This document shows positions 7,871 through 31,286 of a stretch of DNA of 64,000 nt, piece by piece. This stretch comes from Octopus sinensis (lineage: Eukaryota), in NCBI RefSeq assembly GCF_006345805.1, contig NC_043013.1, positions 43,090,001 to 43,154,000 on the forward strand, given 5' to 3'. Below the pieces are notes generated by a model, which saw nothing but the letters and a program-made list of their open reading frames with translations, had not been told where the DNA came from and did no database searches. The stretch's first letter is position 1. Each line of letters starts with the position of its first letter. Position numbers and translations under genes: made by a program.

Positions 7871-8106
7871 ATGGAAACTTCCCCCGTTGAACAGAGTGAG
7901 AAAAATGTTTCAATGATTGTACATGTTGATGACACACAAAGTGATCTAGAAGCTGATCTTGTGGCATCAGAGACGAATAATGAAGAAATGAGCACAACGG
8001 GAAGTGAAGATTCAGATGGCGGAAGTGAAACGGAAAAAATAACTGAAGAAAAGGCTAAGAAGGAAACAGAGCAAACAAAGAAGAAAGGTCATGTTAGGCC
8101 AAAAAG
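7871..8106 (+). CDS. SAFB-like gene, acidic N-terminal exon (start ATG tentative; alternative donor after 8087)
   Basis: caacATGG context; METSPVEQSEKNVSMIVHVDDTQSDLEADL...KKKGHVRPK; donor AAG|GTTGGT. Confidence 0.6.
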
Positions 8107-10424: not shown

Positions 10425-13076
10425 TATACATAGATATATATACACACATATACATAGACGTAGGAGTGGCTGTGTGGTAAGTAGCTTACTTACCAACCAC
10501 ATGGTTCCGAGTTCAGTCCCACTGTGTGGCACCTTGGGCAAGTGTCGTGTACTATAGCCTCAGGCTGACCAAAGCCTTGTGAGTGGATTTGGTAGACGGA
10601 AACTGAAAGAAGCCCGTCGTATATATATATGTGTGTGTGTGTGTGTGCACATTTGTGTGCCTGTTTATCCCCCCATATCACTTAACAACCGATGCTGGTG
10701 TGCTTACGTCATTGTAACTTAGTCGTTCAGCAAAAGAGATCGATAGAATAAGTACTGGGGTTGATTTACTCGACTAAAGGGGGTGCTCCAGCATGGCCAC
10801 AGTCAAATGCCTGAAACAAGTAAAAGAGAGTAAAGATATATATTTATATATATATATGACTGATACATTGGTATATTTAACTTTAAGACTAATATTCATT
10901 GATCCATGACAGAATATATGCTTATTTCAATTGTTGAACCTATCTGAAATTCCCCATGGCATTTTTTTATACTTTTGCATCTTGGGTCTTTTATATGAGC
11001 ACTTCAGACTACTGCCTATACAATAAATAAAGAAACTTTACTATATATATATATATATATATATTTACTATATATATATATATATTTATTCAAACAGGCT
11101 TACTTTGGTTTCCTTCTACTAAACCCACTCACAAGGCTTTGGTCAGCTCAGGGGTATTGTAGAGGACAGTTGCTCAAGGTGTCACTGTGGAAGCATGTGG
11201 CTTAGTGGTTAGGATGTTGGACTTGTGATTGTAAGATTGTGGTTTCGATTCCTGAACTGGGCACCGCGTTGTGTTCTAGAGCAAAACACTTCATTTCATG
11301 TTGTACATGCATACATACTCAAATATATATATATATATATACACTACTTATTTATTTGTTAACTTCAATATATCTCTACCTGGTTGTTTAGATTGAGAAA
11401 CTTGATGTAAAGTTGCATAATATAGATTTGTTTCTAATTTTATTTTATTTGAATGCTGAAATAACATTTCTATTCTGTCTCTTAGCATTCAGAATTCGTT
11501 ATATTTTTTGATATTTCTAAACATTTGTTTTATTGTTGTAGGGATCAGTCGAACGTTGACAGACGTAAGTTTTTTAATTTTTTACTTGAATGTTTTCTTT
11601 CTTTCTAAGCTTATTGTAACAGTTTGAGATATTTGAAATTTGAACATAAGCAGGAGAGTTGTGTTTCATATTTATTGGTTCATTTCATATGTATAATACA
11701 CACACACACACATAGGGTGTCCCTAAAGTCTGGACACTAGGAAATCTCATGTTGGTGGGGGCCACTTTTTCTTCAGTGAACATGTAACAGATGCGACTTA
11801 TCTCACCATGTTGAGAAACCAGTTAATGCCCCAACTTGAAAGGCTAGGTGAAGAACTTTGAGTGGTTCCAACAAGATGACAGCCCTGCCCATTTCACCAC
11901 AGTGGTAAGAAATTGGTTGAATGACAATTTCCCTAACTGGATTGGAAGATGTGGCCATGTGGAGTGATCTCCTTGTTCACCAGATCTTAGCCTCCTTGAC
12001 TTCTTTTTTTTCTTTCTGAGGTGTGCTGAGGGAGAAAGTGTACTGACTGAAAGTCACAGTTGCAACACACACTTGATATAAGAGTGAATGTGCTCAAATT
12101 GATGGCAGTGTAAAGTTAATACATCGGGTTCACGTAAATCTTGCAAAATGCATCAACCTTTGCATCAGAAATGGTGGAAATTATATTGAAGATGTTATTT
12201 GTTAATCTTCCAATTGTATAGAATATTGCTGAAAATTTTATGTGTATTTTGTGAAAATATACATTTTGCCTATGTGTCCAGACTTTAGGCACACCCTATA
12301 TGTGTGTGTGTGTGTGTATTTTATTTATTTATTTATTTATTTATTTATTGAATGTTTTCCTGCATTTAATAGCTCGCAACCACCGTTGGAATTTGAGGAT
12401 CACAGGTCTTCCTTCAAATACCTGTTTGGATGAACTGAAAAGGCTTTGTAGCCAGTACGGCACAGTATGTTGAATGAAATTTTGTTCTTCATTTTCATTT
12501 GATGCTTTTATTATTGAATTAATGATAGTAATTACTCATTAGTACTTATATTCAAAATACCAACAGCAACCTAGTATGTGTATGTGTTATGTATCTCCCA
12601 TTTATGAAAGCCTTACTGATAGTTGCTAAGAAGAGAGACAGAATCAAAATGCTGGAGGTGTTTTCTTAATGATATTTGACAATGTAGTTGTATATGCTTA
12701 GTTAGGCAAGTATGTTTAATTTTGCTCTTGTCTTTTGTTGTCAGTGGTGGGTAAATCACACCAATCACTCATTCTGAACTACAAGTGTTTTTGGTAGTTT
12801 GCTCTCTTGTGAAAATACAATGAAGCTTCCTCTCATCATGATCTGTTACTCCAACACTTTGTATATTCTCTAGATTACACAAAATAACATTAAATCTCAT
12901 AAACAATTTTCTTTAACAGTTCTCTATTTGATTGCAAACAGCAGCTCTTACTAACAGGCTAGCTACACTCTGTTCTTATCTAAGACCCAGATCTCTCAAT
13001 CTTCATTCCAATATCCAAACTTTGCTCTGATAGGTGATATTTGTACATCTGTTGAATTCACTCTCCTTGTCGTTCT

Positions 13077-13124
<48 letters not shown>

Positions 13125-16100
13125 GAAACACTTCCAGTTATTTAAGTTCTAAGTCTCTCCTCATCTACTACTCTCTAAGTACATCTGCTTCTCTTATTAC
13201 TCTCCAAACTTGCTCTACTCACCAACAACTCTTTAACCATAAAGGCACAGTTATGTTGAATGAAATCCTTTCCTTCACATTCATGTAATGTTTTTATTAA
13301 TGAATTAACTCTTCTCTAAAATCCTTGACTTCAATACTCTCAGCTCCGTTTGGCTCTTGCTAGTGCTAGATTAACCATTAAGCAAAATAAGCACGTGCTT
13401 AGGGCATCAAAGGAAGGAGGGGGCCATCACAGAAATGCTAAATGGTTTATGACACAAAAGAAGCCACTTTAAACTTACCAAAATAATATTTGGGATGCCT
13501 TATCTCTCTATTAAGTATAGAAGCAGATGTGTTATGTAAGATTAATTTTGAGAATCAGATCAAAAACTTTGCAATTGAAAAAGTAGGGAAAAACTTTGCG
13601 AATACAAATAAAGTGGAAATATACAAAATTAAATTAGTTTTGTTTCCTTTTGAAAAATAAAAATTTATTTTATGGTTTATTATTATTTATACCTTAAATT
13701 ACATATATATGGGGGTACGAAAATCTTCAAAGTGTTTAGGGCCTCTATGGGTCTTAATCCAGTCTTGGCTCTTGCACTCATTCCATACTCATTTCAAACC
13801 AACATCTGTAAAGCTATTATAGGAAATATGGATGATGCTTCTGACTAATTAGTCACTAATGAAGTCACTTGCCAACACACACTAACCTTTGATCCAAAAA
13901 CATGTCTTTCCCCTCTCCTCTCTCAAAATAATGTACAGTATCCAAAGATTATTGCACATTAACAGGAAATATCTTAAATTGAAGAAATGTAAAATTCTTT
14001 ACAGGAATTTTTTGTTTTTTCATTAAAAAATTTTTTTCTAATGGTTTTGTCAGGAGTAAAAGGCTGTGCCCATATCCTGTTTCTTAAAGAAGGCTGATCT
14101 TGTGCCACCGCTACTTTGGCACTCATTCTTTGTTTCCTCACTTCTCTTCTCCTCCCACCCCTTGCCCCATAATAACCACTATACCCAGTCATTTCTCTTT
14201 GGATGTTGGTTTTCTGGAATTCCTTCACTGCAGCCATCAATTTCAATTGTTCAAAAGAAATAGTTCTAATATTTCTTACCAGTCTTGGAGAACCTGTAAA
14301 AACCACGGGCACTGCCCTTTCCTTTGAATCAGTAAAAAAACACCTGAAAATATTTAATATATTGATACTGATTTCAAATTTTGGCACAAGGCCAGCAATT
14401 CCAGAGGAATAGGTAAAGTCATTTACATTGTCCCCAGTGCTCGACTGGTAATTATTTTACTGACTCTGAAAGGATGAAAGGCAGAGTCGACCTTGGCAGG
14501 ATTTGAACTTAGAACACAAAGCTGGATGAAATACTGTGAAGCAATTTGTCCAGTGTGCTAACGATTCTGCCAGCTCGCTGCCTTTTTCAAGATATTGACG
14601 TTGATAACTTTTGGATTGAATACATACATGTAATTTTTCATGTTTAAAGTTTAACTATTTTCTACTGTTTTTGTCTGTTCATACCAGATTTTGGGTGCCA
14701 AAATATTATCAAAAAAACGAAAAACTGGTGTTCAGTATCGTGCTTGCATAGGAATGTCTCAGCCTGAAGAGGCTGAAAAATGTATCAAGTTTTTGAACCA
14801 AACTAAAATTGAAGGCCATAAGATAAAAGTTCTTAAGGTGAGTTATCCTCTCTTCATTGGTTTGTCTTCAGACCAGATGGTCAGCTACTGAATTAGGTAT
14901 ATATGATGAGCTTTATTGTTATTTACTATTGGAATATTGATGGTCATCGTTTCCAATAGATATAGATTTTGGAGCAAGTTGAGTTAATCAGGTTATTGCA
15001 GTATAAATGTTTAACTCTTGAAAAGAATAGACATTTATATATCAGGTGTTCAGGCTAAATTTGACATGGTTAACTCTTAACTCTTTCGTTACTATTTATT
15101 TCGAGATGCTCTGTGTTTCTTTCAATTATTTAAAATATAACAGAAAATTTAGTAAAATAGCTTAGTTATCATTAACCCTTTAGCATTTAAACCGGCCATA
15201 TCCGGCCAAAAGTATTCTGCCTGTTTTATGTTCAAACTGGCCAGATCTCACACCAACCCTACAATATCGTTTTAAAAATTAACAGCTACCTCATCAAAAT
15301 CTCATAGCTACAAGATAATGCATGATTAGTTCAAAACAATGTGGATAAAAAAAAGTATTAATTTTGGCAGAATAATGTGAACACTAAGGGTTAAGCTAGT
15401 GTTAGAAACCTAAATTGTAACTAAGGTTTCATGGAAGATTTTAATTCAAAGCTTATGAAAACAAGACATTTGTTCTACAGATCCAGAGCTGGTTTCAGCC
15501 ATGTTGGTAACAAAAGGGTTAAAGCGGATAGGCGTTTATATACTGGGTATTTGGGTTAAATTTGACATGGTTAATTCTTAAAGAGGGTAGATGTTTATAC
15601 ACCGAGTGTTCAGGCTAAATTTGACAGTTTGCATAAAAAGAAAAAAAAAACATCTCATCCAAAATTTAAATATTTAAAAAATAAAAAATATGGGTCGATT
15701 TGCTCGACTAAAGGCGGTGCTCCAGCATGGCCGCAGTCAAATGACTGAAACAAGTAAAAGAGTAAAGAGTAAGAGTAAACCAGATTATGGCTGGGAGATA
15801 ACAGTTTAAAGGTAGCAGCTCAAGACAGCCTCAAGACAGCTTCAGAACCTGGTGTATGCATTCTCCACTGTGTTCCTGGGAAGATATTTGAACACCACCC
15901 TGATCTTGGCTACCAGCTCAGTCTTGGTGTTTCAAATAGAGCAGCTGTTATCTTTCTCACCTGTGCCCCACATGTAGTAATCAATGGGATTACGATCAGG
16001 GGAATTAATAATGAGGCCAGAAATTGGAGCTGGTGAAGTTGTAGGCATTCTGTGACAACCACTTCCAGCTCATTCTGTAAATGTGACAAAGAACCAAATC

Positions 16101-19100
16101 CTGCTACCACACATATGGCCTTCTAGCATCAACTCTTTTCAGCCAGGGATTGGGATGTTCAAAGATGTGGAGATGGATTCTGACTTGTGGATTCAGTCAG
16201 AATGCATGCTGTGTCCCTTCCAACTGGCCATAACTTTGTAGTCTCCATTGCACCTGTCCATGTCACATCAAACAGTATTCACAGAGCATTGAGCAGCATG
16301 TCAGTATTTTGATACTCAGTGTGAATTATCATGATACAGGCAACTCTTTTTTTCCAATATTTAGATGGTTTCCAGTGTTCCATGTCAGCTAACTTTTTCT
16401 CAACTACAGCTTTAATAGTTATGCTCTCCAACTTTGTGGACTGTTGACTGTCCACTGATACATCAAGCAGTTTGGAGGGGGGGGGGACAAAGAAAGTGGT
16501 CAAGTTTAGCCTGGACACTGTATGTTGTCAACTGTTTAAGTAAATAGATATCTGGTTATCTATTTAAGAAAGTAGATATAGATAGACGTGATCAGCTATT
16601 TAGATAGGTGTTAGTCAGTTGTTACCCTTGTGACTAGACATGTTTTCACGGAAGGTTGGAGACAAGATAAAACTTGTATGATGGTGACGTTCCTCTTATA
16701 ACTATCATATGATGTTAACCCTTTCGTTACTGTATTTAGTTTGAGATGCTCTGTGTTTCTTACAATTATTTTAAATATGACAAAGAATTTAGTAAAATAA
16801 CTTAGTTATCTTTCAGCTGGTGTTAGGAACATAAATTGTGACTAAGGTTTGGTGGAAGATTTTAATTCAAAATGTATGAAAACAAGACATTTTACCACAG
16901 AGCCGGTTTTGGCCAGGTTAGTAACAAAAGGGTTAAAGCAAAGAAACAGTTGCATGCATGCACACATACATACATACACACACACACACACGATAGGCGT
17001 ATTTCAGTTTCTGTTTGCCAAATCCACTAACAAGGTTTTAGGCTGCCTGGGGCTATAGTAGAAGACGCAATCACTTCCAACCCTATAGCTTTGAGAAAAT
17101 ATTAACTTGCTTGAAAATTTTTTAGGATTGGCAACAGGAAGAGCATCTAGCTGTTGAAAATCTTCCTCAAGAAATTCTCTTTGACCTGTGCAGCCATGGA
17201 AAAAAGTGGATGTTGAATGATGAGGATGATGATAGTTTTAATATGGTTTGTTAGTTTTATGTGGCTTTCTTTTCTACATTTTATGTTGTTTTATATCAGA
17301 AACGATGGAGACAAAACAGTCTGTGGAGAAAACTCGAACTCGCTCAAAAACAGGAGGAGTCTTTCAGATTGTTTCAACATGGTGAACAGTTAAGGTTTGT
17401 TGAAATTCCACTGAAATTATAATTGTTTAATGCTGGATTCCATCATTGTATTCTTTTATTCTTTTACTTGTTTTTGTCATTTGACTGTGGCCATGCTGGG
17501 ACACTGCCTTGAAGGGTTTTAGTCAAACAAATCAACCCCAGGACTTTTTTTTTAAAGAGACTGGTACTTACTCTATTGGTCTCTCTGTGGCAAACCACTG
17601 CATCACAGGGGTGTAAACACATCAACACCGGTTGTCATGTAGTGGTGGTGGAAGATAAACATAAAGACACACACATATGGCGGGTTCTTTCAGTTTCCAT
17701 CTACCAAATCCACTTGAGGCTTTGGTCGGCCCAAGGCTATAGTAGAATACACTTGCCCAAAGTGCCACACAGTGGAACTGAACCCAGAGCCATGTTGTTG
17801 GGAAGCAGACTTCTTACCACACAACCATGCTTTTCTGTGCAGCACATTGGACAAGTGTCTTGTATCATATGCCCAGATTGACCAATGCTTTGTCAGTGAA
17901 ATTTGGTAGATGCAAACTATGTTAAACCTCATCTGAGGGGCTATTCCAGTTTTTGGTAAAAGAATACTCCTGTCACCTGGTTTAACACCACATTGGCCCT
18001 TGGCTGCTTTCAGGCTAGGTCTTTAATCTATGGATAGCTTCTTCCCTTCTAATCAATCTTGGATTGGAAACACTGAAAAAACACATTTTGTGTACTGCTT
18101 TTCATTTTCTGACTAAGTTATAAATCATTTTAAAATCTTTTGAATAGCATATTTGGCTTATGATGAATTTGGAATTTAATTTGTTTCAAAAGCTGGAGTT
18201 AAGTCAAGAGGAAAAAATCCAATTAGTTGGTTGGGCATCACTGAAAATGTTGTACTCTTTATAGAGATGAAAAGAGGATATACTCCTTAGCATGGAAATT
18301 TAATGAAATGATTGTCAGACATACAGTTTCTCGATTCTTGTGGTGAACTGTTGTTTGTGTTGTTGCTTAGTCTCAGATCAAATCTTATTATGCAGACATA
18401 TGATTGAAGACATTCCAGCTGTAACCATCCCATTTTTTATGGCTATCTTTAGAACTATCTTCTTCAATACATATATTTTTTAAGATGAGAGAATGACGAT
18501 GTTATATGTTCAAGATTTCTTGTAGGCACAAGCGTGGATGTATGGTAAGAAGCTTGCTTCTTAACAACATGATTCTGGGTTCAGTCCTACTGTATGGTAC
18601 CTTGGGCTGACCAAGACCTTGTGAGTGGAGGGTTTGGTAGACATAAACTGAAAAAACCCCCGTTGTATATGTGTTTGTTTCTGTGTTTGTCCCTAACCAA
18701 TGTTTGACAACTGTTGTTGGTGTGTGTGCATGTCCCCATAACTTAGTGGTTTGGCAAAAGAGATTGATAGAATAACTACCAGGCTTTAAAAAAAAAATAT
18801 GTGCTGAGGGCGATTCATTCAACTAAAATTCTTTAAGCTCGTGTCCCAGCATGACTGCAGTCTAATGACTGATGCAAGTAAAAGATAAAAGATAGGTCAA
18901 ACAATCACACAGACTCTCTAAACTGTACCTCTACATGATACATATTTAGTGTTATGTGAATGTTAGCTTGATACTTAAATGTCTCTGTCCAAATGTGACT
19001 TCTCTTTTCTGAAAAATGAAATGTGTTTATATATTATCCTTACAACTCAAAAATACCCTATGTCAAGAAGCTGTTCTTTATCCTGTCTATGTTTAAACGC

Positions 19101-21336
19101 TTTATTAAAACCTTCCATATCAGGTTGAAATATTTTTGCCATTTTTTTTTTTGTTCAAACTGACCAGATTAAGTCTTTCATACTCATCCTACAATGGCAT
19201 TCTAAAATAATCTCATCATTCAAAGCTATTAGATAATGCATGATTAATTCCAAACAGCGTGATGCTTATTTATATAAGCATTGCATTTGAAAGTGAAGGT
19301 GCATGGCTCAGTGGTTAGAGCATCAAGCTTACGATTGTGAGGTTGAATCCTGGACCGGGCTGCATGTTGTGTTCTTGAGCAAGACACTTTATTTCATGTT
19401 GCTCCTGTTCACTCAGCGGTAGAAATGAGTTGCAACGTCACAGGGGCCGAGCTGTATCAGCCTTTGCCTTTCCCTTGGATAACATCGGTGGTGTGGAGAG
19501 GGGAGGCCAGTATGCATGGGCGGCTGCTGGTCTCCCATAAACAATCCTGCTTTGACTTGTGCTTGGGAGGGTAACTTTCTAGGTGTAATCCCATGGTCAG
19601 TCATGCCCGAAGGGGGTCTCAGCCACATTTGACAGTAATCTGAATGCTAAAGGGTTAAAGAGTTTACTCTTTTATTCTTTTACTTGTTTCAGTCATTTGA
19701 CTGCAGCCATGCTGGAGCACCGCCTTTAATTGAGCAACTCGACCCCACGACTTATTCTTTTGTAAACCCAGTACTTATTCTGTCAAGTCTCTTTGCTGAA
19801 CCGCTAAGTAACGGGGACCTAAACACCAGCATCGGTTGTCAAGTAATGCTAGGAGGACAAACACACACACGCATACATATATATATATACATATATATGA
19901 CAGGCTTCTTTCAGTTTCCGTCTACCAAATCCACTCACAAGGCTTTGGTCGGCCTGAGGCTATAGTAGAAGACACTTGACCAAGGTGCCACGCAGTGGGA
20001 CTGAACCAGGAACCATGTGGTTGGTAAACAAGCTACTTACCACACAGCCACTCCTGCACCTATTTGTTTAGATAGCTGCAGCTGCTTCTAATATTTCAAA
20101 TATTTAAGGTTAGAAAAGTGATCTTGGGACAAATGCTTAATTTTCCCAGAGATTCCAATGTAAGTTTCTTCGATATTCTGTAAAGTAATACTAGTCAGAT
20201 TAGTTGCAGGTTGGTGTGTGTAGGCTATGATTTTCGTTTTCTTTTTGTTTAAATTTTTGATATCTTTATTTATGTTATTTCACACTTTTCAGGTGGGAGA
20301 AAATGAAACTACAAAATCAGAACCTATCAAAATTTGAAATAGGAAGACAACTTCTTGAACTGAATTTTCGATGGACAGAGGTGTTGCGGTGAGTGAGACA
20401 GATTGTGTTGTCACTCTGTCGACTTAAATTTTTTTATCATTGTCTTTGACATCACTTATATAACTTGACTAATTTATTTTATTCCCCTTGGGGGCTGAAA
20501 TTTCTGGTGTTTTGCTTGACAAGCAACCAAGACTTTTGGCAGTTAGCTGTGCTTGAGAAGATACGTGAAGCTAAATAAAATTGTGGCTCATCATCATCAT
20601 CATCTTTTAACATCTGTTGTCCATGCTGGCATGGGTTGGATAATTTGAGCAAAGCTGGGGAGCTGCACCAGACTTCAGTTTGATTTGGCATGGTTTCCTC
20701 AGCTGGATGCCCTTTCTAACACTAACCACTTTATAGTGTGTGCTGGGTGCTTTCACATGGCACTGCCAGAAGTGCTTTTCACCACCAGAGGGACGGGTCT
20801 TAATACTTCTGCTGTAATATTTTTCTTCATATTCCACTCAATCAGGATTGACAGCAACATATTTATAAAGCAACCTTGTTTTATGAAAAATGAAATTATT
20901 TACTGTGAAGGTCTCTTGTTTTTCAGTAGCAAAGAATAAATCCCATTATCTACATTGGTATATCAGCTATTGTATTGATATTGGAGCTGTTTATTGTCTT
21001 ATTCTCTGGCTATAAATCAACTATTGATCAGTCCAGATTGTGTAGACCTATAGTCAAAGCTGTGATCGTTCAACCTATTTTTAAGACTTGAGAAATATGT
21101 TGTCCAATGTATCTGATTTTTTGCTCTCTTTTTTTTTTTCTTTTTTCGAGAGATGGTGAGGAACGATTTTTTAAAACTCTTTTTCTTTCTAAAGGAAGAT
21201 TTGGCTGCTGTTGCTAGTATGTTGAATGCCATAGAGCAGTTTTCCCACCCTATTTTTTCCCAGGCCCTACTATAACTTTCCAGAAAAATATATGTCCCCC
21301 TGGTAGTTGGAAAAAAAAAATCAACTTTATCTTTTG

Positions 21337-21373
<37 letters not shown>

Positions 21374-24300
21374 GCACGCACATACATGATGGGCTTGTTT
21401 CAGTTTCCATCTACCAAATCTACTCAAGGCTTTTTGGACAGCTTGATACTATGGTAGAATACACTTGCCTAAGGTGCCACACAATGGGACTGAACCTGGA
21501 ACCATGTGATTGGGAAGCAAGCTACTTACCACACAGCCACGCCTTTCATAATTATATACTTTTCTTAATGCCCACACTGGGGCATTAGAATAGCGCTATA
21601 CTGTAGCAAACAGTCTTCATACTGTATGCTTGGCTGGGGGGATTAACTTGGCTAGGCTGAGTATAGGTGTGGTCTGTTTGCTGTAAAAAGATTTTCAAAA
21701 TTACATGTCCCACTAAAAAAAAAAAATGTTAACTCCCACACCCTACCACAATCTTCCCAGGTCCCACTGGTGGGAATGTATGCCCCACTTGTCTCGGTGG
21801 TGTCTTGACTATTTACTATCTTTTCCTCTATCATTCAGTGCAGCAGTTGTTTACTTTATTTTTCTGTTTGTTGTTTTAAATAGGCTGAATGAGATGAGAA
21901 ATGCCATAGAAAATCCTGGTGATCCAAGAAATATGAATAAGGGATCACGGAGGAACAGTTCCCATACCCCCTCCATGTTTCAATTTCCATTCCAAAATCA
22001 ACCCTGGTAAGTCATGCATGACAGAGACAATTTATCTTTTAATCTTCATCTTGTTTTGGTCATTGTACTATAGCCATGCTGGGGTACTGCTGTGAAACGT
22101 TTAGTCAAACAACTTGACTCCGTTACTAAGTTTTTTATGAAAGCCTGGTGCTTATTCTGTCGATCTCTATTTGCCAAATTACTAAGTTATGGGGAAGTAA
22201 GCAAATCAACACTGGTTGTCAAGCAGTGGTAGGGGATAAGCACAAAGACTCAAACATATAGATGGATATATACATGCGCACACACACACACACACACAGA
22301 GTGACAGGCTTCTTTCAGTTTCCATCTACCAAATCCATTCGCAAGGCTTTGGTTGACCCAAAGCTGCAGTAGAAGACACTTTCCCAAGGTGCTGTGCAGT
22401 GAGACTGAACTTGGAACAATATGGTTGGGAAGCTAACTTCTTATCACACAGGCTCGACCACATTTTCGGGGGGGGGGTAGAAAGATTTAGCTGCTGTTTC
22501 TAGTATGTTGAGTACTATATTCATGTTGGCTTGCTTGGTACTCTGATCATTTACCCTTCTGTAAAAAGTTATTTACTATCTTATCCTCTGGCTGCTTATT
22601 CTGCGCAGTATCTTCATTTCGCTGTTTATTGTTTAAAATAGGCTGGAAGAAATGACATGTTCTGTGAAAAGGCCTCTGGATTGAGGCAACCCATGTAAGG
22701 GAGAGTTCTCCAGTGGATTCACAGGATCAAAGGAGAGAAATTCCAATATTCTGTCTATATTTGAACTTCCATCCCAAAATCAATCTCAGTAAGTTGTGTG
22801 TGATGGAGACAATTCAGTGAATCCATTTTTTTTTCTTTAGCAAATGATTTTTCAGAAGATTTGGTTGCTGTTTCTTGTCTGTCAAGTACCATGGAGGCAC
22901 TTGTGTTGGTTCAGTTGGTGTTTAGGGTTAAGGTTATTTAATGTTTTCCTCTCACTGCTTATCATTCGATCCAGCAATTGTTTATTTCTGTTAACTTCAT
23001 TTTCCTGTTTATTGTTTAAAACAGGATGGAAGCAAGCCATTCCATGCAGAGATCTCAATTTCAAAGTAACCGAGATGGACCCACACAATCAAAGAGAAAG
23101 AGGAATAGGAGGTTCAATGTCCATGTCCCCTCTCTATTTGAACTTCCATTCCACAATCAACCTTGGTAAGCTGTGTGTGATGGACACCAATATACCATTG
23201 CTTTCATTTTACAGTAATCCCTTGACTATTGCAAGTGTTGCTTTTGAAAAAAAACCCTCGATAGGTGAAAGTCCGTGAAATAGAAACAGTAATGTACTGT
23301 ATATTTTATTATTTTTATAATTTGTATATATTTATTACAAATGCAAAACAACACTACACACTCGCCTCCTGGCTTTAGTTTTCCATACGGTGTGTGCAAT
23401 TCTTTGTTTACTCATCTACGGTACACTACGTATTTTCTTTTAATATATTTTAATTAATGTGTTATACAGTACAGAAAGAGCTGTATTTTTATTGATTGAA
23501 TTTTAGGCATGAAAATGCTTATTTTACTACAGAAATAATTGAAATTTAAAAAAATATAAACATCTATTGGCCTCAGAAATCCACAATATACTGAGGAGTC
23601 CATGATGTAAATTTACATATATTAGCCTGAAAAATCTACGATGTACTGAGGGTGTGATAGATGAACCATGATATGGCGAGTGGTTACTGTACTAGAATTG
23701 CTGTGTTCTAAATTAACATTACTTTTGCCTTTGGCCTTTTACAAGTGCTAGTGTACATACCTGTCACTAATTGTTCTTGTTTGTGGTTATACCTTTATGT
23801 CTCACCATACTGAACAGATCTTTGATCAGAGGTATTTAAGTCTTGATTATTCCATCTGTTTTTAGACATAATATAGGCTTACATTATCTGATTGATTGAT
23901 TGATTGATTCCAGTTTCAGCTCATGAGCTGTGGCCATGCTGGGGCACTGCCATTTAAATTTTCATGGCAACAAAGAATGATTTGACAAAAATTTGGTTGC
24001 CATTTTTTAGTTGCCTTAGCTGTCACATAAAGACACTCTTGTTGGCACAACTGGTGTCCTAGTTGTTTATTGTTCAGAGTTAAGCCTATCATCTTATCAT
24101 CTATCTGCTTATCATTCAGTAGAGGGTTGTTTACTTTTGTTAATGTCATTTTGTTGTTTACTATTTAAAATAGGCTGAAAGACACAATCGGTTCCATGCA
24201 AAAACCTCAAGATGGAAGCAATCCCCAAATTGAAGCCCTCTTGGCTGGACCCATGGGATCGCTAATGAGAAATTCCCCTATACTCGCTGCATTAGGACTT

Positions 24301-27300
24301 CTATTACAAAGTCAGTTTCGGTAAGCAGTGTGATAGAGATTACTGGAAATGTGATGTTCTAAATTAAAATTTCTTTCACCTTTTTTAATGTTGGCATCTT
24401 ACAAGTGCGTGTGTGTATCATTTTTTATCTCTTTTTCTCACAGTGTTAATGAATACAAGAACACAGATTATGGAAAACAAGTTCAGCATAATGAGAGGAG
24501 TGGGAAAGTTTTGGGAGGTGGAAGCCATTCTGATGTCCCTGAAGTTTCGGGAGATGGAAGCCATTCTGATGTTCCTGAAGTTTCGGGAGGTGGAAGCCAA
24601 TCTGATGTCCCTGAAGTTTCGGGAGGTGGAAGCCAATCTGATGTCCCTGAAGTTTCGGGAGGTGGAAGCCAATCTGATGTCCCTGAAGTTTCGGGAGGTG
24701 GAAGCCATTCTGATGTCCCTGAAGAAAAACAAATGAAGAAGCAGAGAACAGATCCTTTCCCAGATGTTCAAAAGAAAGTTGAAACACAAATTGAAGAAAA
24801 ACTTAAACAGTAATTTTGCTTGTTATTTAAACGTCTTAACTTTTACTTTTGATTTTAACTATATAAAATCCATGTTGATCTAAACGTGAGCTGATATATA
24901 GATGAGTTTTGTTGTAAACAATATTCTTCATATAGATCAGTGTTGGTGCATGCACCAGCCTCTGTCTTGGTCAGTGTTGATGCATATACCAGCTTTTCGT
25001 AGAGGTCAATGCTAGTCATTAATTGTTCTTGTTTTGTGATTCTAAATCCACAGCTTGTGTTGTTTACTCCTAGGTTTCATCAAATTGAGCAGACCTTTGA
25101 TCAAAGGTATTCCGGTCTTGATCATTCCATCTATTTTTAGACATAATGTAGGCCTACATTATCTGTTGCATCCATTTAAAATTTTAAGCCAATAAATAGT
25201 GATTTGTCAAAGATTTGGCTGTTGATTTTCATTGAGTAATCACCTAGAAGTACGCTCCTTAGCTTAGTTGTGTATTATTGAGATTTAAGGCTATTTACTA
25301 TCTTTTCCCTTACCTGCTATCATTCAGTACAGCAATTGTTTACTTCTGTTAACTTCATTTGTTGCTTATTCTTTAAAATAGGCTGAGAGAACTGGTACAT
25401 TCCATACAGATGCCTCTGAATCAAAGGAAACAACACGAGGAACCCAATCGACCCAGCATGAGCAATTATAACAACGCTTCTAGATTTGATCTTCCATTCC
25501 AGAATGAATCTCGGTAAGCTGTGTGTACTGGAAACCCTGTGTGTAGGGCTTCATTGATTTCTTATTCATTGAAATTGTGATGTTCAACATTAAAGTTTCT
25601 CCTTTTCTTTTTCTTTTCTCAGTTTTGTCTTCTTGTGTGTAATTATATAAGTATCTGCATTATATGTCTATTTGTGTGTGTACACACTCTCACCCACACA
25701 CATATATGCATGTATTATGTTTGTGTATATACATACTTACTCTCACACGTGTATGTATGTTTGTGTGTGTGTGTGTATATATATAAACTAACAGTGGAAT
25801 AAACAGATACACTTTTCCCTTACGTATCTACATAGTATATATTGTTTACTGGGTACTGCTGACCAAATCTGTGGTTGATGCAAAGTCTCAGTTAGGCCGA
25901 GGGCGACTTGGTGGTGGAACAAGGAGGTGGACAGTGCTATAAGAGCAAAGAGACAGGCTTGGAAGGACTGGGAAAACGGTGGAAGCAAAGCATTGTATCA
26001 GGGAGCCAGAAGGAAGGCTAGGCAATATCCTGTGAAGACATGGTCTGTCATGGGCAATGTTACGTTAGTTAGAAACAAAGGTTGGTGAAAGGAAAGGCAT
26101 CTAACTGTAGAAAATCTGCCCCAGTAAACTCTATCAAACCCATTCAAGCCTAGTGGTTAGTGGTTTCAGACTTTGAGATCAAAGAACTTACAGACACAAA
26201 TCAATATGAAAAAGGAAGATATAAAGGCTTTAAGATGCAGTGAACAGTCAGGGATTTAGAGACATATTAATCAAAACATTTCTTGAGGCGAGAAGAGGAA
26301 ATAGTGAAGTAATCAGGACCGTTAAAGGCAAGAGATGTTGACGTAACAAAAAATGTTAAGTTTTAAAAACAACACAGTAAAACACTAATTTAAAAAGTCT
26401 AGAGAAGTTGTACAACTGGTGCATGTATATGAACAGCAATGCTACATGGTGGTGAGATGTGGGCCTTGAATGCAGAGAACATGTGAAGGCTAGAGAGAAA
26501 TGAAGCTATTATGCTCTGCTGGCTGTGCAATGGAGTGCTAATGTAGTGTGAGAAAAGTTTGAGATAAGAGGAATTAGATGTAGTGTGCAAGACAAGATGT
26601 GTTGGTTTGGTCATTGGATGCCAATCCCTTAAAGTGGATGGGGCTTGTAGAAGGGGGAGACCCAGGAAAACATGGGATGGAGTACTGAAAGCCAATCTCA
26701 AGACACTTAGCCTTATGAAGGATATGACAAAGGACTGAGATATCGGCATCTTGCTGTAATCAAGAAGACCCATCCACCACTGCAGAATTGATACCTGTAC
26801 TGATGCCATGTAAAAAGCACCCAGTACATTGTAAAATAGTTTTAGGAAGGGCATCCAGCTGTAAAAACCATGCCAGAACAGACAAAGGAGCCTGGTGTGC
26901 CCCCCTCCCGGGCTTTACCAGCTCCTGTCAAACTGTCCAACCCATGCCAGCATGGAAAAACAGACATTAAATGATAAGATGATGATGATGTACAAAGTCC
27001 AGAGAGGAAGGAATATCTATAGTATAGTGAAGAACTGATAGCAGTAGATGTGTGTGTAGTAGTAGTAGTAGTAGATGGGTTTGTAACAGAAAGAAAACTA
27101 ATTATCTAAAAATTCCACATCTGCACAAACATCTGAAACCCTATCCAGAAAAGGCCGATTGATTGGCATGAAGTTACAGATGTGTTCCAGCCCCTTGTCC
27201 ACAAGCACATTGTCTCCTACCGTTGCTATAATAGCCTCTGCTCCTCAGGAAATAGTTGTTTTAAGCCACCCACTTCCAGACATTCCAATTCCACTTACCT

Positions 27301-30300
27301 CTTCTCATCTGATCACACATGTTGTTTCATTCACCCCTGCCCCAGGTCCTTCATTGATATCTATGACCAATCTTTTTTTCCCCCCAGAAAATTCTGCAAT
27401 TTCTTTACTGCTCATATCTTTCCAACAAATGTTGACTTGAAACAATATTCAAGAAGAATGTTGATGTTACCAGTCTCACCTGTCAAGAAGGCCTGTGAAA
27501 GCTATGGGTCCTGCCACTTGCTCCAGACCCATTAAGTATAAAAGAAAAAAAATGACTATTTGGTTACAGATTATTAATGACATCATGAGAGTAGGGAAAG
27601 CAGAACTGGAAGTTGAAGGCTGCTTTGATGAACATAACAAATAAGAAATGATAAAGTATTTGTGGAAGAGTCCTGTCTGAGATGTTAAATCAGTAACGAA
27701 CTGATGACTGGTCCAGAATAGTAATGATGTATAATATTTAACTTTGATTTTGGCTCTGTACAGGTCAGTGTTGATCCAAATGTTGGCAGGTGCACTTATA
27801 GGTCAGAGTTCTTGTTAGCGACAACTTCTATTTACATCACTGTTGGAGCATATACCAGCTTCTCTACAGAGTACACAACAGCCTCAGTTGTTTTTGTTCT
27901 GTGGTTACAAACTCCCTGGTGGTGTTGTTCTGCACTACATCAGATCAGATACAGCAGACCTTTGATCAAAAGTATTCCGTCCATGATCATTCTATGTATT
28001 TTTCAGATATAATATATAGGTCTACATTATCTAATACTAATAAAAATAGATAATGTAGACCTACATTATCTATTTTTTATGTTTATAAGACAGCAAAGAG
28101 GGATTTAAAGATTTGGCTGCTGTTTCTAGTTGCTTGAACAACCACATAGGAAGCACTTGTTTGGAGTTAAGACTATTCACTATCTTATTCTCTATTTGCT
28201 TAGCATTCAGTGCTATAGTTGTTTACTTCTGTTAACTTTATTTTGCTGTTTATTGTTTAAAATAGGATGGGGGAAATGAGTCATTCTATGAAGAGACCTC
28301 GTGGGGACGAACCCTGGAACGGACCCAGAAGATCCAGGATGAGTGGTTATAACAACAACACTTCTAGATATGAACCCCCATTCCAGAATGAATCATAGTA
28401 AGTTTCGCAAGATGGAGACAGTTCCTTCCTGACTTCATATTTACTGGAACTGTGTGGTTTTTCATTAGGTTTTTCTTTTTCTTTTTGCCTTTCTCAGCCT
28501 TTGACCTCTTGCACTTGTGTGTGTGTGTGTGTGTGTATACTTATGCCGATGCCATGTAAAATGCACTCATGCTGCTGGTACATAAAAATGCATCCAGCAC
28601 ACTGTAACATGGTTGGCATTAAGAAGGGCATTGAGCTGTAGAAATCATGCCAAAACAGACAATTGGAGTATGGACAGCTCTGCAGCTGGTCAGCTCCTGT
28701 CAAACTGTCCAACCCATGCCAGCATGGAAAACAGGCATTAAACAATGATGATATAACCATATATTTTCAGGTTCAGTCCCACTGTGTGGCACCTTGGGCA
28801 GGTATCTTCTATAGCCTCAGGCTGACCAAAACCTTGTGAGTGGATATGATAGACAGGAATTGAAATAAGCCTGTCATATGTATATAGTTGTGTGTTTGTG
28901 TCTCCTTGTCATTGCATGATAGTTGTAAATAAGCCTCACAATCACACAAGTGGTGTCGATCATTTCCAGTTGCAGGTGTAAACTTGTCCAGCTAGGGGGG
29001 AAATATAACCTTACCTGGAAGCAAGTGAGGGGGTGGGCAGTTGGAAGGGCATCTGGCTGTAGAAAATCTACCTCAATAAATTCCGTCAGACCATGTAAAC
29101 CTGGAAAAGATGTTAAATTGATAATGATTGTGTTTATGATATATATCATCATTATTGTCTGCCTTCCATGCTGGTGCGGGTTGGCTGGTTTGACAGGAGC
29201 CAGCCAGGTAGAAGACTACCCCAGGCTACTGTGTCTGTTTTGGCATGGTTTTTACAGGTGGATGTCCTTCCTAACACCAACTGACCCACAGAGTGGACTG
29301 AGTGCTTTTTACATGACCCCAGCACAGGTGAGGTCAGTCTTGGTGTGCCTTCCAAAAGCCAACCACTTCACAATGTGAACTGGATGCTTTTTATGTGGCA
29401 CCAGCACTGGCAGGGTCACCAAGTAACTTGCAAGACAAGGAATTTTGGAGGAGGTGATCTTGTGTCAGATGAAAGGTTAGAGTGTGACAGAGAAACAGAT
29501 AGGCAAAAACGGGTGTTTTGTTATAGAGGAGGTACATGGTTACATATATATTATGTCATTTCTCTTTTTCTCTGTCAGCTATAATGAATATGAGAATACA
29601 GATTATGGAAGACGGGCCGATCAGAAAGAAAGAGGAATGAGGAGTTGGGAAATGGGTCCTTCGCAAGATTTCCAAGGCAGATACAATGACTGGTCTCGGA
29701 CAGATGAAAACTGGTAATTTCCTTTTTTTTTTTTTTTTATCTGAATTTTTAGTCTTAGAGACCAGTCCAAACAGATGGCAGAGCCTGATGCAATCTTCTG
29801 CCAGTATGGGAAGCAGATTTTAAGTGATGATGATCTTACCTTTTTACAGATCACTGTTGAGCTAAACAAGCTACCATAAAAGCGAGTGTTAGTCTAAACA
29901 ACATCCTCTATATAGGTTAGTATTGGCATATACCCATGGTTCTATACAGGTCAATCTTGTTTTAACAAGATGACCTATACAGAACCATGTGTTTAAGCCA
30001 GGTCAAAATATCAAAGTGCCTTTTGTGCAGGTATATTTCTAAACACTTCTATAACAAAGTAAATTTGCTCTTTTTATGTCAGATTTACTTCTGTTTCCAG
30101 GACAGGCTTTGATGCAAGAAGAGATATTGGTCGAAGTAGGGGACCTGAAAGAAGATATAGTGGCCCTAATCGAGAACAAGATTCTGTATCATCTTATAAC
30201 AGAATGAGTCAAATGAGAAGTTCTCATGGTAAGTTTCTATTGTTTTACTCGATGTTTTTGACCAGCTCTCTCCCCCTCTCCATTTCACTCACTCACCGAC

Positions 30301-31286
30301 AGATGAAATTTTGTACGCTCTATTTCCCAATATAGTATTTTCACTGTTTCTCTGCCTTCTGAAGCAATCCCTCTTTCAATACAATCCCTTTCTTCCTTGA
30401 ATCCTATTCTTTACATATCTCATTATTCTGTTTTAATATTAATTTATTGGAATCTTCAGTTTTTATATTTGTGCACCTTTTCTCTGTCTTCCTTTTAGGT
30501 GGTGGATCTAACCAGAGATCTTGGGATTCCAGCAGTGCAGATAGGAAAGGGGACAGCTGGTCCCACACATATGGAGACATTGGCAACAGTAGCATGAACC
30601 AACCCAATGACCAGTGGTTTGGTAACCCCGTGAACTCAACAGGGCGTGACGCTACTGGAGCATTTGTTGACAGTAGTAGAAAAACTAACAGTAAAGGGAA
30701 GGGGTACAACCAGAGACCCACTTACAGTAAAGGGAAGAAGTACAACCAGAGATCCACTAACAGTGACGGGATGGGGTACAACCAGAGACCTACTAACAGT
30801 GAAGGGATGGGGTACTACCAGAGACCTACTAACAGTGAAGGGATGGGGTACAACCAGGGACCCACTAACAGTGAAGGGATGGGGTACAACCAGGGACCCA
30901 CTAACAGTGAAGGGATGGGGTACAACCAGGGATCCACTAACAGTGAAGGGATGGGGTACAACCAGGGACCCACTAACAGTGAAGGGATGGGGTACAACCA
31001 GGGACCCACTAACAGTGAAGGGATGGGGTACAACCAGGGATCCACTAACAGTGAAGGGATGGGGTACAACCAGGTACCCACTAACAGTGAAGGGATGGGG
31101 TACAACCAGACATCTACTAACATGTTTGACAATTCTCAGGCACAGGATGGGATCACGATGAATACATATGGTGGTGGTAATGATGGACAAATGCAACAGC
31201 CTTATTTCAGTGCTTACAACACAGGATACCAAAATGAAGGCTTTCCATCAAGTACAGTTGGGAGTCAGAACAGGTTGTTTAACTAG
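7871..31286 (+). CDS. SAFB-like: Diverged SAFB/SLTM-like RRM protein, multi-exon gene (about 927 aa without the stop-containing exon)
   Basis: Model: 7871-8106, 11542-11564, 12373-12464, 14688-14837, 17300-17394, 20293-20388, 21884-22006, [22642-22788 has TGA], 23025-23165, 24174-24320, 24444-24809, 25382-25513, 28266-28397, 29579-29713, 30101-30228, 30499-31286. All junctions are GT-AG and phase-consistent (2784 nt). The RRM NLRITGLPSNTCLDELKRLCSQYGT|ILGAKILSKKRKTGVQYRACIGMSQPEEAEKCIKFLNQTKIEGHKIKVLK aligns by eye to SAFB [32 protein letters not shown]...[24 protein letters not shown]. The start codon is uncertain. Confidence 0.75.
8223..8637. repeat. Direct duplication (period 229 bp) of a Penelope-relic-like segment bounded by (TA)n
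   Basis: Cores 8223-8408 and 8452-8637 read identical. A diverged relative lies at about 41905-42030. Confidence 0.85.
8863..8939 (-). ncRNA. Dead hammerhead remnant (3' half intact, CUGANGA core missing)
   Basis: Minus strand GCCTAT...ATAGGCT GAAA CAGCTG TA AGTG. Shares ataggctgaaacagct with the motif at 43541-43556. Confidence 0.5.
9375..9668 (+). mobile_element. RTE LINE 3'UTR fragment
   Basis: ...ggcgttaggaagggcatccagc...catgctagcatggaaagcgg...(gat)n. Further copies at about 32345-32730, 40954-41111(-), 43720-44058, 55520-55900(-), 58105-58435 and 60600-60915. Confidence 0.85.
10244..10280 (+). ncRNA. Minimal type I hammerhead ribozyme motif (U4C core variant) within a 57-bp-stem hairpin (10185-10309)
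   Basis: TGT CCGACGA ACG-GGAA-TGT GAAA CTC-C-GAG TA ACA: stem I 3 bp, stem II 3 bp, stem III ACTC/GAGT, GUA cleavage triplet. Confidence 0.65.
10458..10832 (+). mobile_element. tRNA-derived SINE (family A), near full length
   Basis: Head ggagtggctgtgtggtaag...gggttcagtccc, central (TA/TG)n, tail gcagtcaaatgactgaaacaagtaaaagag. Other copies at about 17455-17830(-), 18530-18890, 19660-20060(-), 22065-22450(-), 34844-35225, 49400-49760 and 50197-50660. Confidence 0.85.
11542..11564 (+). CDS. SAFB-like gene, 23-nt micro-exon (DQSNVDR)
   Basis: ttgttgtag|GGATCAGTCGAACGTTGACAGAC|gtaagt. Restores frame between the donor after 8106 (phase 2) and the acceptor at 12373 (phase 1). Confidence 0.6.
11715..12296 (+). 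mobile_element. Tc1/mariner internal-deletion derivative
   Basis: TIRs gggtgtccctaaagtctggacac / gtgtccagactttaggcacaccc with TA on both sides. Internal decayed WFQQD.SPAH...WIGR.G...SPDL transposase C-terminus. Confidence 0.85.
12373..12464 (+). CDS. SAFB-like gene, RRM first half
   Basis: taatag|CTCGC...GGCACA|gtatgt; RNHRWNLRITGLPSNTCLDELKRLCSQYGT. Confidence 0.8.
14688..14837 (+). CDS. SAFB-like gene, RRM second half
   Basis: ataccag|ATTTTG...CTTAAG|gtgagt; ILGAKILSKK...GHKIKVLK. Confidence 0.85.
15081..15518. mobile_element. piggyBac-like MITE (TTAA TSD) containing a second piggyBac-like MITE (15176-15390)
   Basis: TTAA at 15077, 15172, 15391 and 15519. An uninterrupted copy of the outer element at 16719-16932 is also TTAA-flanked. 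Confidence 0.85.
16719..16932. mobile_element. piggyBac-like MITE
   Basis: TTAA ccctttcgttac ... gtaacaaaaggg TTAA. Confidence 0.85.
17300..17394 (+). CDS. SAFB-like gene, coiled-coil exon 1
   Basis: atatcag|AAACGA...TTAAG|gtttgt. Only the phase-0 frame is open: KRWRQNSLWRKLELAQKQEESFRLFQHGEQLR. Confidence 0.7.
19295..19620 (+). mobile_element. tRNA-derived SINE (family C)
   Basis: tggctcagtggttagagc A-box head, then gttgtgttcttgagcaagacacttt. Fragments of the same type at about 11170-11310 and 44090-44380. Confidence 0.7.
20293..20388 (+). CDS. SAFB-like gene, coiled-coil exon 2
   Basis: ttttcag|GTGGGAG...TTGCG|gtgagt; WEKMKLQNQNLSKFEIGRQLLELNFRWTEVLR. Confidence 0.75.
21884..22006 (+). 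CDS. SAFB-like gene, duplicated exon A1
   Basis: aaatag|GCTG...CCCTG|gtaagt; 123 nt; ends SMFQFPFQNQPW. Confidence 0.75.
22642..22788 (+). pseudogene. Duplicated exon A2 with in-frame TGA (22682-22684): pseudo-exon or poison exon
   Basis: Intact aaatag| and |gtaagt sites, 147 nt. GAT TGA GGC AAC aligns to GAT GGA AGC AAT of A4. Confidence 0.7.
23025..23165 (+). CDS. SAFB-like gene, duplicated exon A3
   Basis: aaacag|GATG...CCTTG|gtaagc; 141 nt; ends SLFELPFHNQPW. Confidence 0.7.
24174..24320 (+). CDS. SAFB-like gene, duplicated exon A4
   Basis: aaatag|GCTG...TTTCG|gtaagc; 147 nt open frame. Confidence 0.7.
24444..24809 (+). CDS. SAFB-like gene, exon B1 with GGGSHSDVPEVS repeats
   Basis: ctcacag|TGTTAATGAATAC...AAACA|gtaatt; 366 nt; starts VNEYKNTDYG, homologous to exon B2. 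Confidence 0.7.
24514..24723 (+). repeat. Coding minisatellite, 36-bp unit, 5 full copies plus one partial
   Basis: ggaggtggaagcca(t/a)tctgatgtccctgaagtttcg. Confidence 0.95.
25382..25513 (+). CDS. SAFB-like gene, duplicated exon A5
   Basis: aaatag|GCTG...TCTCG|gtaagc; 132 nt; ends SRFDLPFQNESR. Confidence 0.7.
25850..26990 (+). mobile_element. Decayed RTE LINE fragments (linker region; ORF2 C-terminus plus 3'UTR)
   Basis: TWWNKEVDSAIRAKRQAWKDW at about 25910. RRGRPRKTWDGVLKANLKTL at about 26650, followed by a (gat)n tail at about 26980. Confidence 0.7.
28266..28397 (+). CDS. SAFB-like gene, duplicated exon A6
   Basis: aaatag|GATG...TCATA|gtaagt; 132 nt; ends SRYEPPFQNES. Confidence 0.7.
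29579..29713 (+). CDS. SAFB-like gene, exon B2
   Basis: tctgtcag|CTATAATGAATATGAG...AACTG|gtaatt; YNEYENTDYGRRADQKERG... Confidence 0.7.
30101..30228 (+). CDS. SAFB-like gene, R/G/S-rich penultimate exon
   Basis: tttccag|GACAGG...CATG|gtaagt; TGFDARRDIGRSRGPERRYSGPNR... Confidence 0.75.
30499..31286 (+). CDS. SAFB-like gene, terminal coding exon with prion-like repeat tail
   Basis: ccttttag|GTGGT...; open to TAG at 31284-31286 (ORF track 30447..31286). Confidence 0.8.
30678..31109 (+). repeat. Coding minisatellite, 12 x 36 bp (xxTNSEGMGYNQ)
   Basis: Directly visible, with higher-order order GPT-GPT-GST repeated twice. Confidence 0.95.

Follow-up and report, generated by a model that had tools for sequence, protein, structure and literature searches.

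The gene LOC115220812 of Octopus sinensis, which lies in a 64,000-nucleotide stretch of contig NC_043013.1 (assembly GCF_006345805.1, forward-strand positions 43,090,001 to 43,154,000; hereafter the window, numbered from its first letter), carries an array of two repeated exon types, with six copies of one (A) and three of the other (B). We conclude, with a probability of about 0.85, that this array is the product of serial exon amplification in a fast-evolving, octopus-specific and SAP-less member of a tandem cluster of genes like SLTM and the nuclear-matrix gene SAFB, and that one copy now serves as a cassette exon and another is a pseudoexon. The evidence lies in the anatomy of the array, its orthology, the exon usage of annotated products and the maintenance of its reading frame, all of which are shown here. 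An earlier note on this DNA, made from the letters alone, had read the array as a candidate cassette or mutually exclusive splicing module that tunes the number of a short linear motif; its account of the anatomy held up well, and its account of the splicing held for a single exon.

Anatomy of the exon array

Splicing 15 coding exons of the window yields a 927-aa open reading frame (ORF) that matches XP_029646837.1 exactly, a protein named 'epsin isoform X1' in RefSeq, in which the array contributes the exon chain A1-A3-A4-B1-A5-A6-B2 with A2 left out. The A exons were located by a scan for their acceptor context, which found six sites with a GTAAG donor after each, and a DNA profile built from the A units recovered exactly six copies in the window (E = 1e-58 to 1e-88). 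The positions, lengths and phase (2/2) first proposed for them were confirmed, each copy having an AG acceptor, a GTAAG donor and a frame read from its second base, and translation reproduced the peptide endings quoted in the earlier note. A multiple alignment likewise bore out that the units have in common their upstream intron, their polypyrimidine/AG acceptor region and a donor-side sequence (GTAAGYTGTGTG..ATGGAGAC), and B1 and B2 proved to be homologous exons of phase 2/2, as had been suggested. The copies are as follows.

21884..22006, plus strand: A1, 123 nt, ending MFQFPFQNQP; in 11 of 11 annotated products
22642..22788, plus strand: A2, 147 nt, pseudoexon with intact splice sites; in 0 of 11 annotated products
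23025..23165, plus strand: A3, 141 nt, ending LFELPFHNQP; constitutive
24174..24320, plus strand: A4, 147 nt, motif lost (LGLLLQSQF); constitutive
24444..24809, plus strand: B1, 366 nt, NEYKNTDYG...; constitutive
25382..25513, plus strand: A5, 132 nt, ending RFDLPFQNES, motif identical in O. bimaculoides; constitutive
27545..27740 (limits approximate), plus strand: psi-B, the decayed third B, belonging to the A5 unit
28266..28397, plus strand: A6, 132 nt, ending RYEPPFQNES (last two bases TA); cassette exon, included by 7 of 11 annotated products
29579..29713, plus strand: B2, 135 nt, YNEYENTDYG...; constitutive

Three features had been overlooked in the earlier note: the decayed B, an in-frame TGA in A2 (22682-22684; RPLD*GNP) and the stop codon, TAG, that is created when A6 is joined to the exon after B2, which begins with G. 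The first base of B2 is C, which completes a Tyr codon with the TA of A6 and an Arg codon with the CG of A5. The claim that any subset of A exons can be included without a frameshift therefore stands for the frame and fails for the ORF. In five of the six A copies the coding frame contains no stop codon, compared with about 2.8 stops per copy in the other two frames; under simulated neutral decay to 30-45% divergence, a copy stays open 7-12% of the time. Identity among the copies is 55-67% in the distal intron, rises to 77-83% over the last 40 nt before the exon, and is 62% at the exon's 5' end, 48-51% in its middle and 70-73% across the motif and donor, a profile which indicates that splice signals and motif have been kept while the exon middle has been free to vary. 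The ratio of nonsynonymous to synonymous divergence (dN/dS) among the six paralogous A copies is saturated and noisy (dS 0.5-3) and serves as a hint only.

Orthology and age of the array

Word-indexed searches of protein sequences, in which the array and the N- and C-terminal parts of the product served as queries, returned only paralogs, namely O. bimaculoides SAFB-like proteins of 43-44% identity with one A and one B each. An exhaustive profile search led to O. bimaculoides XP_014784467.1 (834 aa), the only family member with several (five) matched stretches, and its gene, once rebuilt, has 15 exons with A1, A3, A4, B1, A5, A6 and B2 in series and A2 skipped. The window and O. bimaculoides CM046617.1 are collinear, the downstream tektin gene included. 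Identity to the O. vulgaris locus is 99%, over 11 kb and across the whole array, and the A2 stop is common to O. sinensis and O. vulgaris. In O. bimaculoides the corresponding codon is CGA, so that A2 is open there yet still skipped. Between O. sinensis and O. bimaculoides every splice site has been conserved, and those of A2 are conserved in all three species.

The exon phylogeny that the earlier note had called for, built from the units of O. sinensis and O. bimaculoides, pairs each A copy with its ortholog at 100% bootstrap; the array must therefore have existed before O. bimaculoides split off, with no homogenisation of its copies thereafter. The comparison with SAFB, of which the earlier note said that the vertebrate protein is not known to have such an array, also held: A and B occur once each in canonical octopus SAFB, in Argonauta SAFB and in the neighbouring paralogs, and a Logan-assembled homolog (P0010) likewise has single copies.

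How the array arose

In a paralog with one copy of each exon, the order of elements is a D5 intron block, a GATTTGG element, A, a short intron, B and a D8-like intron. This order is repeated three times in the window, in the A4, A5 and A6 units, with D8 abutting D5, and these junctions are the mark of a tandem duplication that broke in the intron preceding A and in the one following B. The large duplicated unit thus includes the D5 and D8 intron blocks, which the earlier note had not recognised.

23748..23863, plus strand: intron block D5 of the large A-B unit, found again at 25023-25138 and 27888-28003 and also 5' of the paralog's single A
24897..24998, plus strand: intron block D8, from the intron after B; second copy at 27797-27864

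Units A1-A3 are shorter and contain A only, and after A3 just the start of the A-B intron is left (repeat family D17). A short palindrome (...aggtctacattatctaatactaataaaaatagataatgtagacct...) at 28018-28076 breaks the D5 block of the A6 unit.

We propose that in the ancestor of O. sinensis, O. vulgaris and O. bimaculoides a symmetric phase-2/2 pair of exons, A and B, was amplified by tandem segmental duplication. The pair would have sat between the coiled-coil region and the glycine-rich tail, with an A probably ending ...SRF-E/D-L-P-F-Q-N-E-S and a B probably starting YNEYENTDYG. Duplication of two kinds of unit, a large one (A, B and intron) and a short one (A only), would have given the six A and three B copies, and the reading frame would have survived each event because all the exons involved are multiples of 3 and of the same phase. 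On this scheme the copies are now used serially, with A1, A3, A4, B1, A5 and B2 constitutive, A6 optional, A2 unused and one B decayed, and the result would be a longer, largely disordered linker bearing three or four intact aromatic-Pro-Phe-Gln/His-Asn motifs.

Classic cases of tandemly repeated exons are those of collagen and nebulin. The array resembles such systems in its adjacent, homologous exons of the same phase, in homology that extends into the introns, in serial splicing and in intronic breakpoints. The generation of internal protein repeats by tandem exon duplication has been reviewed (PMC9013439). Compared with these systems, the repeat here is short, weakly constrained and disordered and lies in a lineage-specific paralog of an RNA-binding protein; it also has two nested unit sizes (A, and A plus B), with expanding 36-nt repeats inside exons as a third level.

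Exon usage and mode of splicing

Exon usage was tabulated over 11 annotated models: five isoforms of O. sinensis, five models of O. vulgaris (from a 90% cluster) and one of O. bimaculoides. A1, A3, A4, B1, A5 and B2 are present in all 11 and A2 in none, while A6 is present in seven and skipped in four (O. sinensis X4; O. vulgaris CAI9735043, CAI9735045 and CAI9735046). RefSeq alternative isoforms require transcript support. The alternative forms of O. vulgaris are PASA updates drawn from Iso-Seq and RNA-seq assemblies (PMC10700109). In models lacking A6, A5 is joined to B2 as ...FDLPFQNES-R-YNEYENTDYG, which restores the ancestral A-B junction, and every annotated product has four or five A exons in series. 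The proposal of cassette splicing accordingly applies to A6, for which models with and without the exon both keep the frame, and fails for A1, A3, A4 and A5, which are always present. Free combinatorial use of the copies is contradicted by the same four exons, present in 11 of 11 models, and by A2, present in none and carrying a stop in O. sinensis and O. vulgaris.

A broader form of this proposal, in which the whole array is a regulated multi-cassette module and the number of motifs is set by a choice of A exons that varies with the tissue, appears unlikely. It would suit the symmetric A and B exons, all multiples of 3 (every skipping variant that we built stays open), the weak type of their acceptors (tttaaaatag/G) and the optional use of A6 in two species. 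Against it, A1, A3, A4 and A5 occur in all 11 products, including the Iso-Seq-informed set from O. vulgaris; forms lacking A4 and B1 together, or B1 alone, were looked up and are not in the protein collection; and the motif copies have not been uniformly kept.

The other mode put forward in the earlier note, mutually exclusive use, is contradicted by the presence of at least four A exons in series in each annotated product and by the failure to find docking/selector complementarity. We therefore give next to no credence to a Dscam-type cluster in which pairing between a docking site and an upstream element would select one A exon per transcript. Such a cluster would account for a conserved element of ~22 nt about 170 nt upstream of each copy, and an inverted copy of this element lies 460 nt upstream of a direct copy in the locus of a neighbouring paralog (L001); tandem duplication can create such selector sets (PMC6071210). 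The element (GATTTGGCTGCTGTTTCTAG) has five matches at no more than three mismatches, against 0.01 expected by chance.

28108..28129, plus strand: conserved upstream intron element AAGATTTGGCTGCTGTTTCTAG, which recurs with starts at 21196, 22482, 22856 and 25210 and, in weaker form, near 23990

The upstream intron sequence in which it lies is ancestral, and the element itself is not special to the array, both being present 5' of the single A exon of a paralogous gene. Its reverse complement is absent from the plus strand of the gene at up to five substitutions in both O. sinensis and O. bimaculoides, and a complement of the donor-side element was not found in the gene either. The best duplex site for at least five of the six upstream regions reaches -20.9 kcal/mol, no better than shuffled introns (mean -18.6, minimum -23.9), and sits in a short interspersed nuclear element (SINE). 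On the strength of exact, fuzzy and energy-based scans we rejected the docking/selector hypothesis. Since every A and B exon is a multiple of 3 and no intron is shorter than 236 nt, neither frame nor steric exclusion applies. The array is like known mutually exclusive clusters (Dscam; human sets, PMC5740500; the competing-structure model, PMC6071210) in its tandem origin, common phase, similar exon lengths and a conserved intron element per copy; unlike them, its copies are included together, with no docking site found and nothing enforcing exclusivity. Outside the array, a direct copy of GATTTGGCTGCTGTTTCTAG lies at window 5100-5121, 2.7 kb upstream of exon 1, and inverted copies lie in the paralog locus at L001 12867-12888 and 18341-18362; these may mean that the element belongs to some old dispersed repeat, such as a terminal inverted repeat.

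The silent copy A2 invites a further explanation, that it is a poison exon through which the gene regulates itself by stop codon and transcript decay. The exon has kept intact splice sites in three species, its TGA is in frame in O. sinensis and O. vulgaris, and it is missing from all protein models, as an isoform targeted for decay would be. Poison exons are usually highly conserved, whereas A2 is no better conserved than introns (94.6% vs 92.9%); moreover, the exon is open in O. bimaculoides, where the codon is CGA, so that the stop is recent, and it is skipped there all the same. We therefore regard autoregulation through A2 as very unlikely. Two candidate rules for skipping were also tried and rejected: A2 lacks the CTGTTAAC box of A3-A6, which might have signified branch-point loss, but so does constitutive A1, and an A at donor position -1 is common to A2 and A6 but occurs in constitutive B1 as well.

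Selection and the repeated motif

Between O. sinensis and O. bimaculoides, identity counted over substitutions is 92.9% in introns, 89.8% in the exons of the whole gene, 88.1% in the included A exons and 94.6% in A2. Included A exons differ from introns (Fisher p = 2e-5) and from A2 (p = 0.03), and A2 does not differ from introns. For the same species pair, dN/dS is 0.92 in A exons, 0.51 in B exons, 0.62 in the rest and 0.68 over the whole gene. The exons of the gene diverge faster than its introns (10.2% vs 7.1%), synonymous sites included (dS 0.146), and for this reason positive selection cannot be claimed. At the rate seen in introns, 11.5 indels per kb of which only 28% are multiples of 3, the exons would be expected to carry about 29 indels; between the species, coding lengths differ by 24, 3, 180, 12 and 138 nt, each a multiple of 3.

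These figures bear on the possibility that LOC115220812 is a decaying duplicate and its array a neutral relic with no function. The dN/dS values of 0.92 and 0.68, the loss of the SAP domain, the changed RNP1 region, the degeneration of A2, A4 and one B, and exons that diverge faster than introns would all fit such decay. It is, however, difficult to reconcile with an intact ORF of 835-927 aa over 15 exons in three species with all splice sites kept, with coding indels that are without exception multiples of 3 where some 29, mostly frame-breaking, would be expected, with a lower divergence in the unused A2 (5.4%) than in used copies (11.9%), or with the existence of transcript-based isoforms, and we consider it highly improbable. 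The picture is of an array whose reading frame is protected, and of a region that would be translated but loosely constrained, as expected for a disordered linker.

As the earlier note had claimed, the exon units multiply a short motif, F/Y-x-x-P-F-Q/H-N, which reads FQFPFQN in A1, FELPFHN in A3, FDLPFQN in A5 and YEPPFQN in A6. It has been lost from A4 in both species, which for O. sinensis is evident from the endings quoted in the earlier note itself, and has decayed in A3 of O. bimaculoides (FERSFRNQP); in A5 and A6 it is identical between the two. Its counterpart is SRFDLPFPNESRYNEYENTDYGRR in canonical octopus SAFB, PRFDPGYQNESRYND in Argonauta and just SRF in the Logan-assembled P0010, and the motif is therefore conserved within octopods. 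We infer that the motif is a putative binding site whose copy number would matter. The motif-less copy A4 has a hydrophobic sequence (ILAALGLLLQSQF) and, alone among the A copies, was modelled as a helix, though at low confidence; it may have acquired another role. In a single-sequence AlphaFold model, A1, A3, A5, A6 and B2 have pLDDT <50 and no secondary structure, the RRM is of modest confidence, and A4 and the B1-A5 junction form low-confidence helices.

Several points weigh against serial amplification of functional, constitutively spliced copies. Exon usage was taken from annotated models rather than read counts, so that rare or tissue-specific skipping of A1, A3, A4 or A5 is invisible in it, and inclusion of A2 in transcripts bound for nonsense-mediated decay would not show in such models. 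The A-exon dN/dS near 1 suggests that the amino-acid sequence is barely constrained, the case for function in each of the copies is weakened by motif decay (A4 of both species, A3 of O. bimaculoides), and a single-sequence structure model is a weak indicator of the predicted disorder.

A cassette exon between inverted repeats

A6, the sole optional exon, lies between inverted copies of one SINE-like repeat.

26793..26959, plus strand: SINE-like repeat upstream of A6, complementary to 29164-29329
29164..29329, minus strand: inverted SINE-like repeat downstream of A6, partner of 26793-26959 and of 28598-28752

Complementarity between the repeats flanking A6 is 78%, and their pairing is predicted to yield -111 kcal/mol, compared with about -10 for shuffled sequence; the same-sense copy at 28598-28752 can compete for 29164-29329, at -83 kcal/mol. 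The upstream arm falls within a 2.08-kb segment between A5 and A6 (26014-28094) that is absent in O. bimaculoides and contains, besides the decayed B, a SINE-like copy and one block each of D8 and D5. Since unit-derived sequence is among its contents, its deletion in O. bimaculoides is the more likely course. Inverted intronic repeats, such as Alu pairs in primates, promote exon skipping, and we infer that the flanking SINE-like repeats may cause the skipping of A6. The arrangement is like that of Alu-pair exon skipping in that A6 is enclosed by inverted copies able to pair; it is unlike it in the second, same-sense downstream copy that competes for the same partner, and in being known from predicted pairing.

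Skipping A6 lowers the number of intact motifs from four to three. A more ambitious proposal is that the array is young and evolves adaptively as a multivalent docking region. In the lineage of O. sinensis and O. vulgaris, the SINE-like repeat upstream of A6, within the segment missing from O. bimaculoides, would have given rise to the inverted pair that loops out A6, and a constitutive repeat would thereby have become a valency switch between four and three motifs. If it were true, positive selection would explain why the expressed copies diverge faster than introns, but we think it improbable.

A SAFB-like gene without a SAP domain

We return to serial amplification and to the gene in which it took place. 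Pfam finds an RRM_1 domain (35.3 bits against a cut-off of 20.7) and nothing else in the product. A SAP domain was found by Pfam neither in the product nor in its O. bimaculoides ortholog, but is present in canonical O. sinensis SAFB, and a tblastn search of the 7.8 kb preceding exon 1 with the canonical protein located no SAP exon, whereas the neighbouring paralogs have one. Homology to canonical SAFB runs on upstream of the exon 1 ATG, and the gene is therefore a 5'-truncated copy. The RNP1 stretch reads QYRACIGM in O. sinensis, QYRGCIGM in O. vulgaris and QYRASIGM in O. bimaculoides, against RCYGFVTM in canonical octopus SAFB, and RNA binding may be altered by this change. The C-terminal half (coiled-coil exon, A, B and Gly-rich tail) has 43-56% identity to O. 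bimaculoides SAFB-like proteins and canonical O. sinensis SAFB. For the Arg/Glu- and Lys/Ser-rich middle region of canonical SAFB (residues ~460-700), the coiled-coil exon was the only tblastn match in the window, and sequence of such low complexity may escape this search. The names in RefSeq, 'epsin isoform X1-X3' for O. sinensis and, in the past, 'GATA zinc finger domain-containing protein 14-like' for O. bimaculoides, have the look of artefacts of low-complexity sequence; the homology is to SAFB/SLTM. A literature search on SAFB in octopus found nothing relevant. The remaining coding exons are listed here.

7871..8106, plus strand: exon 1, with start codon and acidic region
11542..11564, plus strand: micro-exon 2, 23 nt
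12373..12464, plus strand: first half of the RRM
14688..14837, plus strand: second half of the RRM, with RNP1 region QYRACIGM
17300..17394, plus strand: exon 5, helical linker
20293..20388, plus strand: coiled-coil exon, phase 2/2, last bases CG; constitutive, leading into the array
30101..30228, plus strand: constitutive exon after B2, first base G
30499..31286, plus strand: last coding exon, with 36-nt repeat

In O. bimaculoides the SAFB-like genes form a tandem cluster on one chromosome, with the gene for P0003 ~40 kb from the ortholog and more copies beside both. In the neighbouring paralogs (L001 ~9994-10117 and 11836-11952) the coiled-coil exon upstream of A is itself tandemly duplicated, which is visible in P0002 and P0003 as repeated LERMKLEKMKLEKEK... 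segments, and same-phase exon duplication thus recurs in this gene family. The gene resembles SAFB1, SAFB2 and SLTM in its RRM, its coiled-coil exon, its A and B segments and its homologous C-terminal region, and the family here forms a tandem cluster; it differs in lacking SAP, in its altered RNP1 and in having six A and three B copies in place of one each.

Other features of the gene and window

Isoforms otherwise differ by complete units of 12 aa, which belong to the 36-nt repeats of B1 and of the last exon. The tandem repeat of B1 (GGSHSDVPEVSG; 24506-24724) comprises 6.1 near-identical copies, compared with one in O. bimaculoides (L002 21812-21997), and its number of units varies in O. 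sinensis X2 and X5 and in some O. vulgaris models. That of the last exon (GMGYNQGPTNSE; 30684-31109) has 11.8 copies against 7.8 in O. bimaculoides (L002 25601-25882), and O. sinensis isoform X3 has two units fewer. These 12-aa differences may reflect splicing inside the repeat, for which GT..AG is available in the B1 repeat, copy-number polymorphism or an alignment artefact. Two O. vulgaris models (P0035 and P0037) have an alternative first exon, MLGQKARNHRW..., and drop the acidic N-terminus.

The window is eukaryotic in character and AT-rich, with many SINE-like repeats and microsatellites. Downstream of LOC115220812 a tektin gene runs on the plus strand from 38977-39294 onward, an arrangement that recurs in O. 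bimaculoides. Transposon remnants lie at 11727-11964, 56199-56615 and 59392-59930; mariner/Tc1-like transposase ORF pieces occur in the intron before the RRM and near 59.5 kb, and a reverse-transcriptase-like ORF near 56.3 kb.

Significance

In conclusion, the array is an ordinary repeat expansion by exon duplication, with no splicing switchboard and no new splicing mechanism; it is of a known kind, tandem exon amplification, in a gene that is already in RefSeq under misleading names. The analysis corrects those names ('epsin' and 'GATA zinc finger domain-containing protein 14-like') and provides a clean, datable case of gene growth through exon amplification, made possible by a run of symmetric, same-phase exons. 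It also documents how the fates of the copies diverged after amplification, with four A exons constitutive, one a cassette, one a silent pseudoexon and one B decayed, in the setting of a lineage-specific SAFB-like gene cluster of octopuses.

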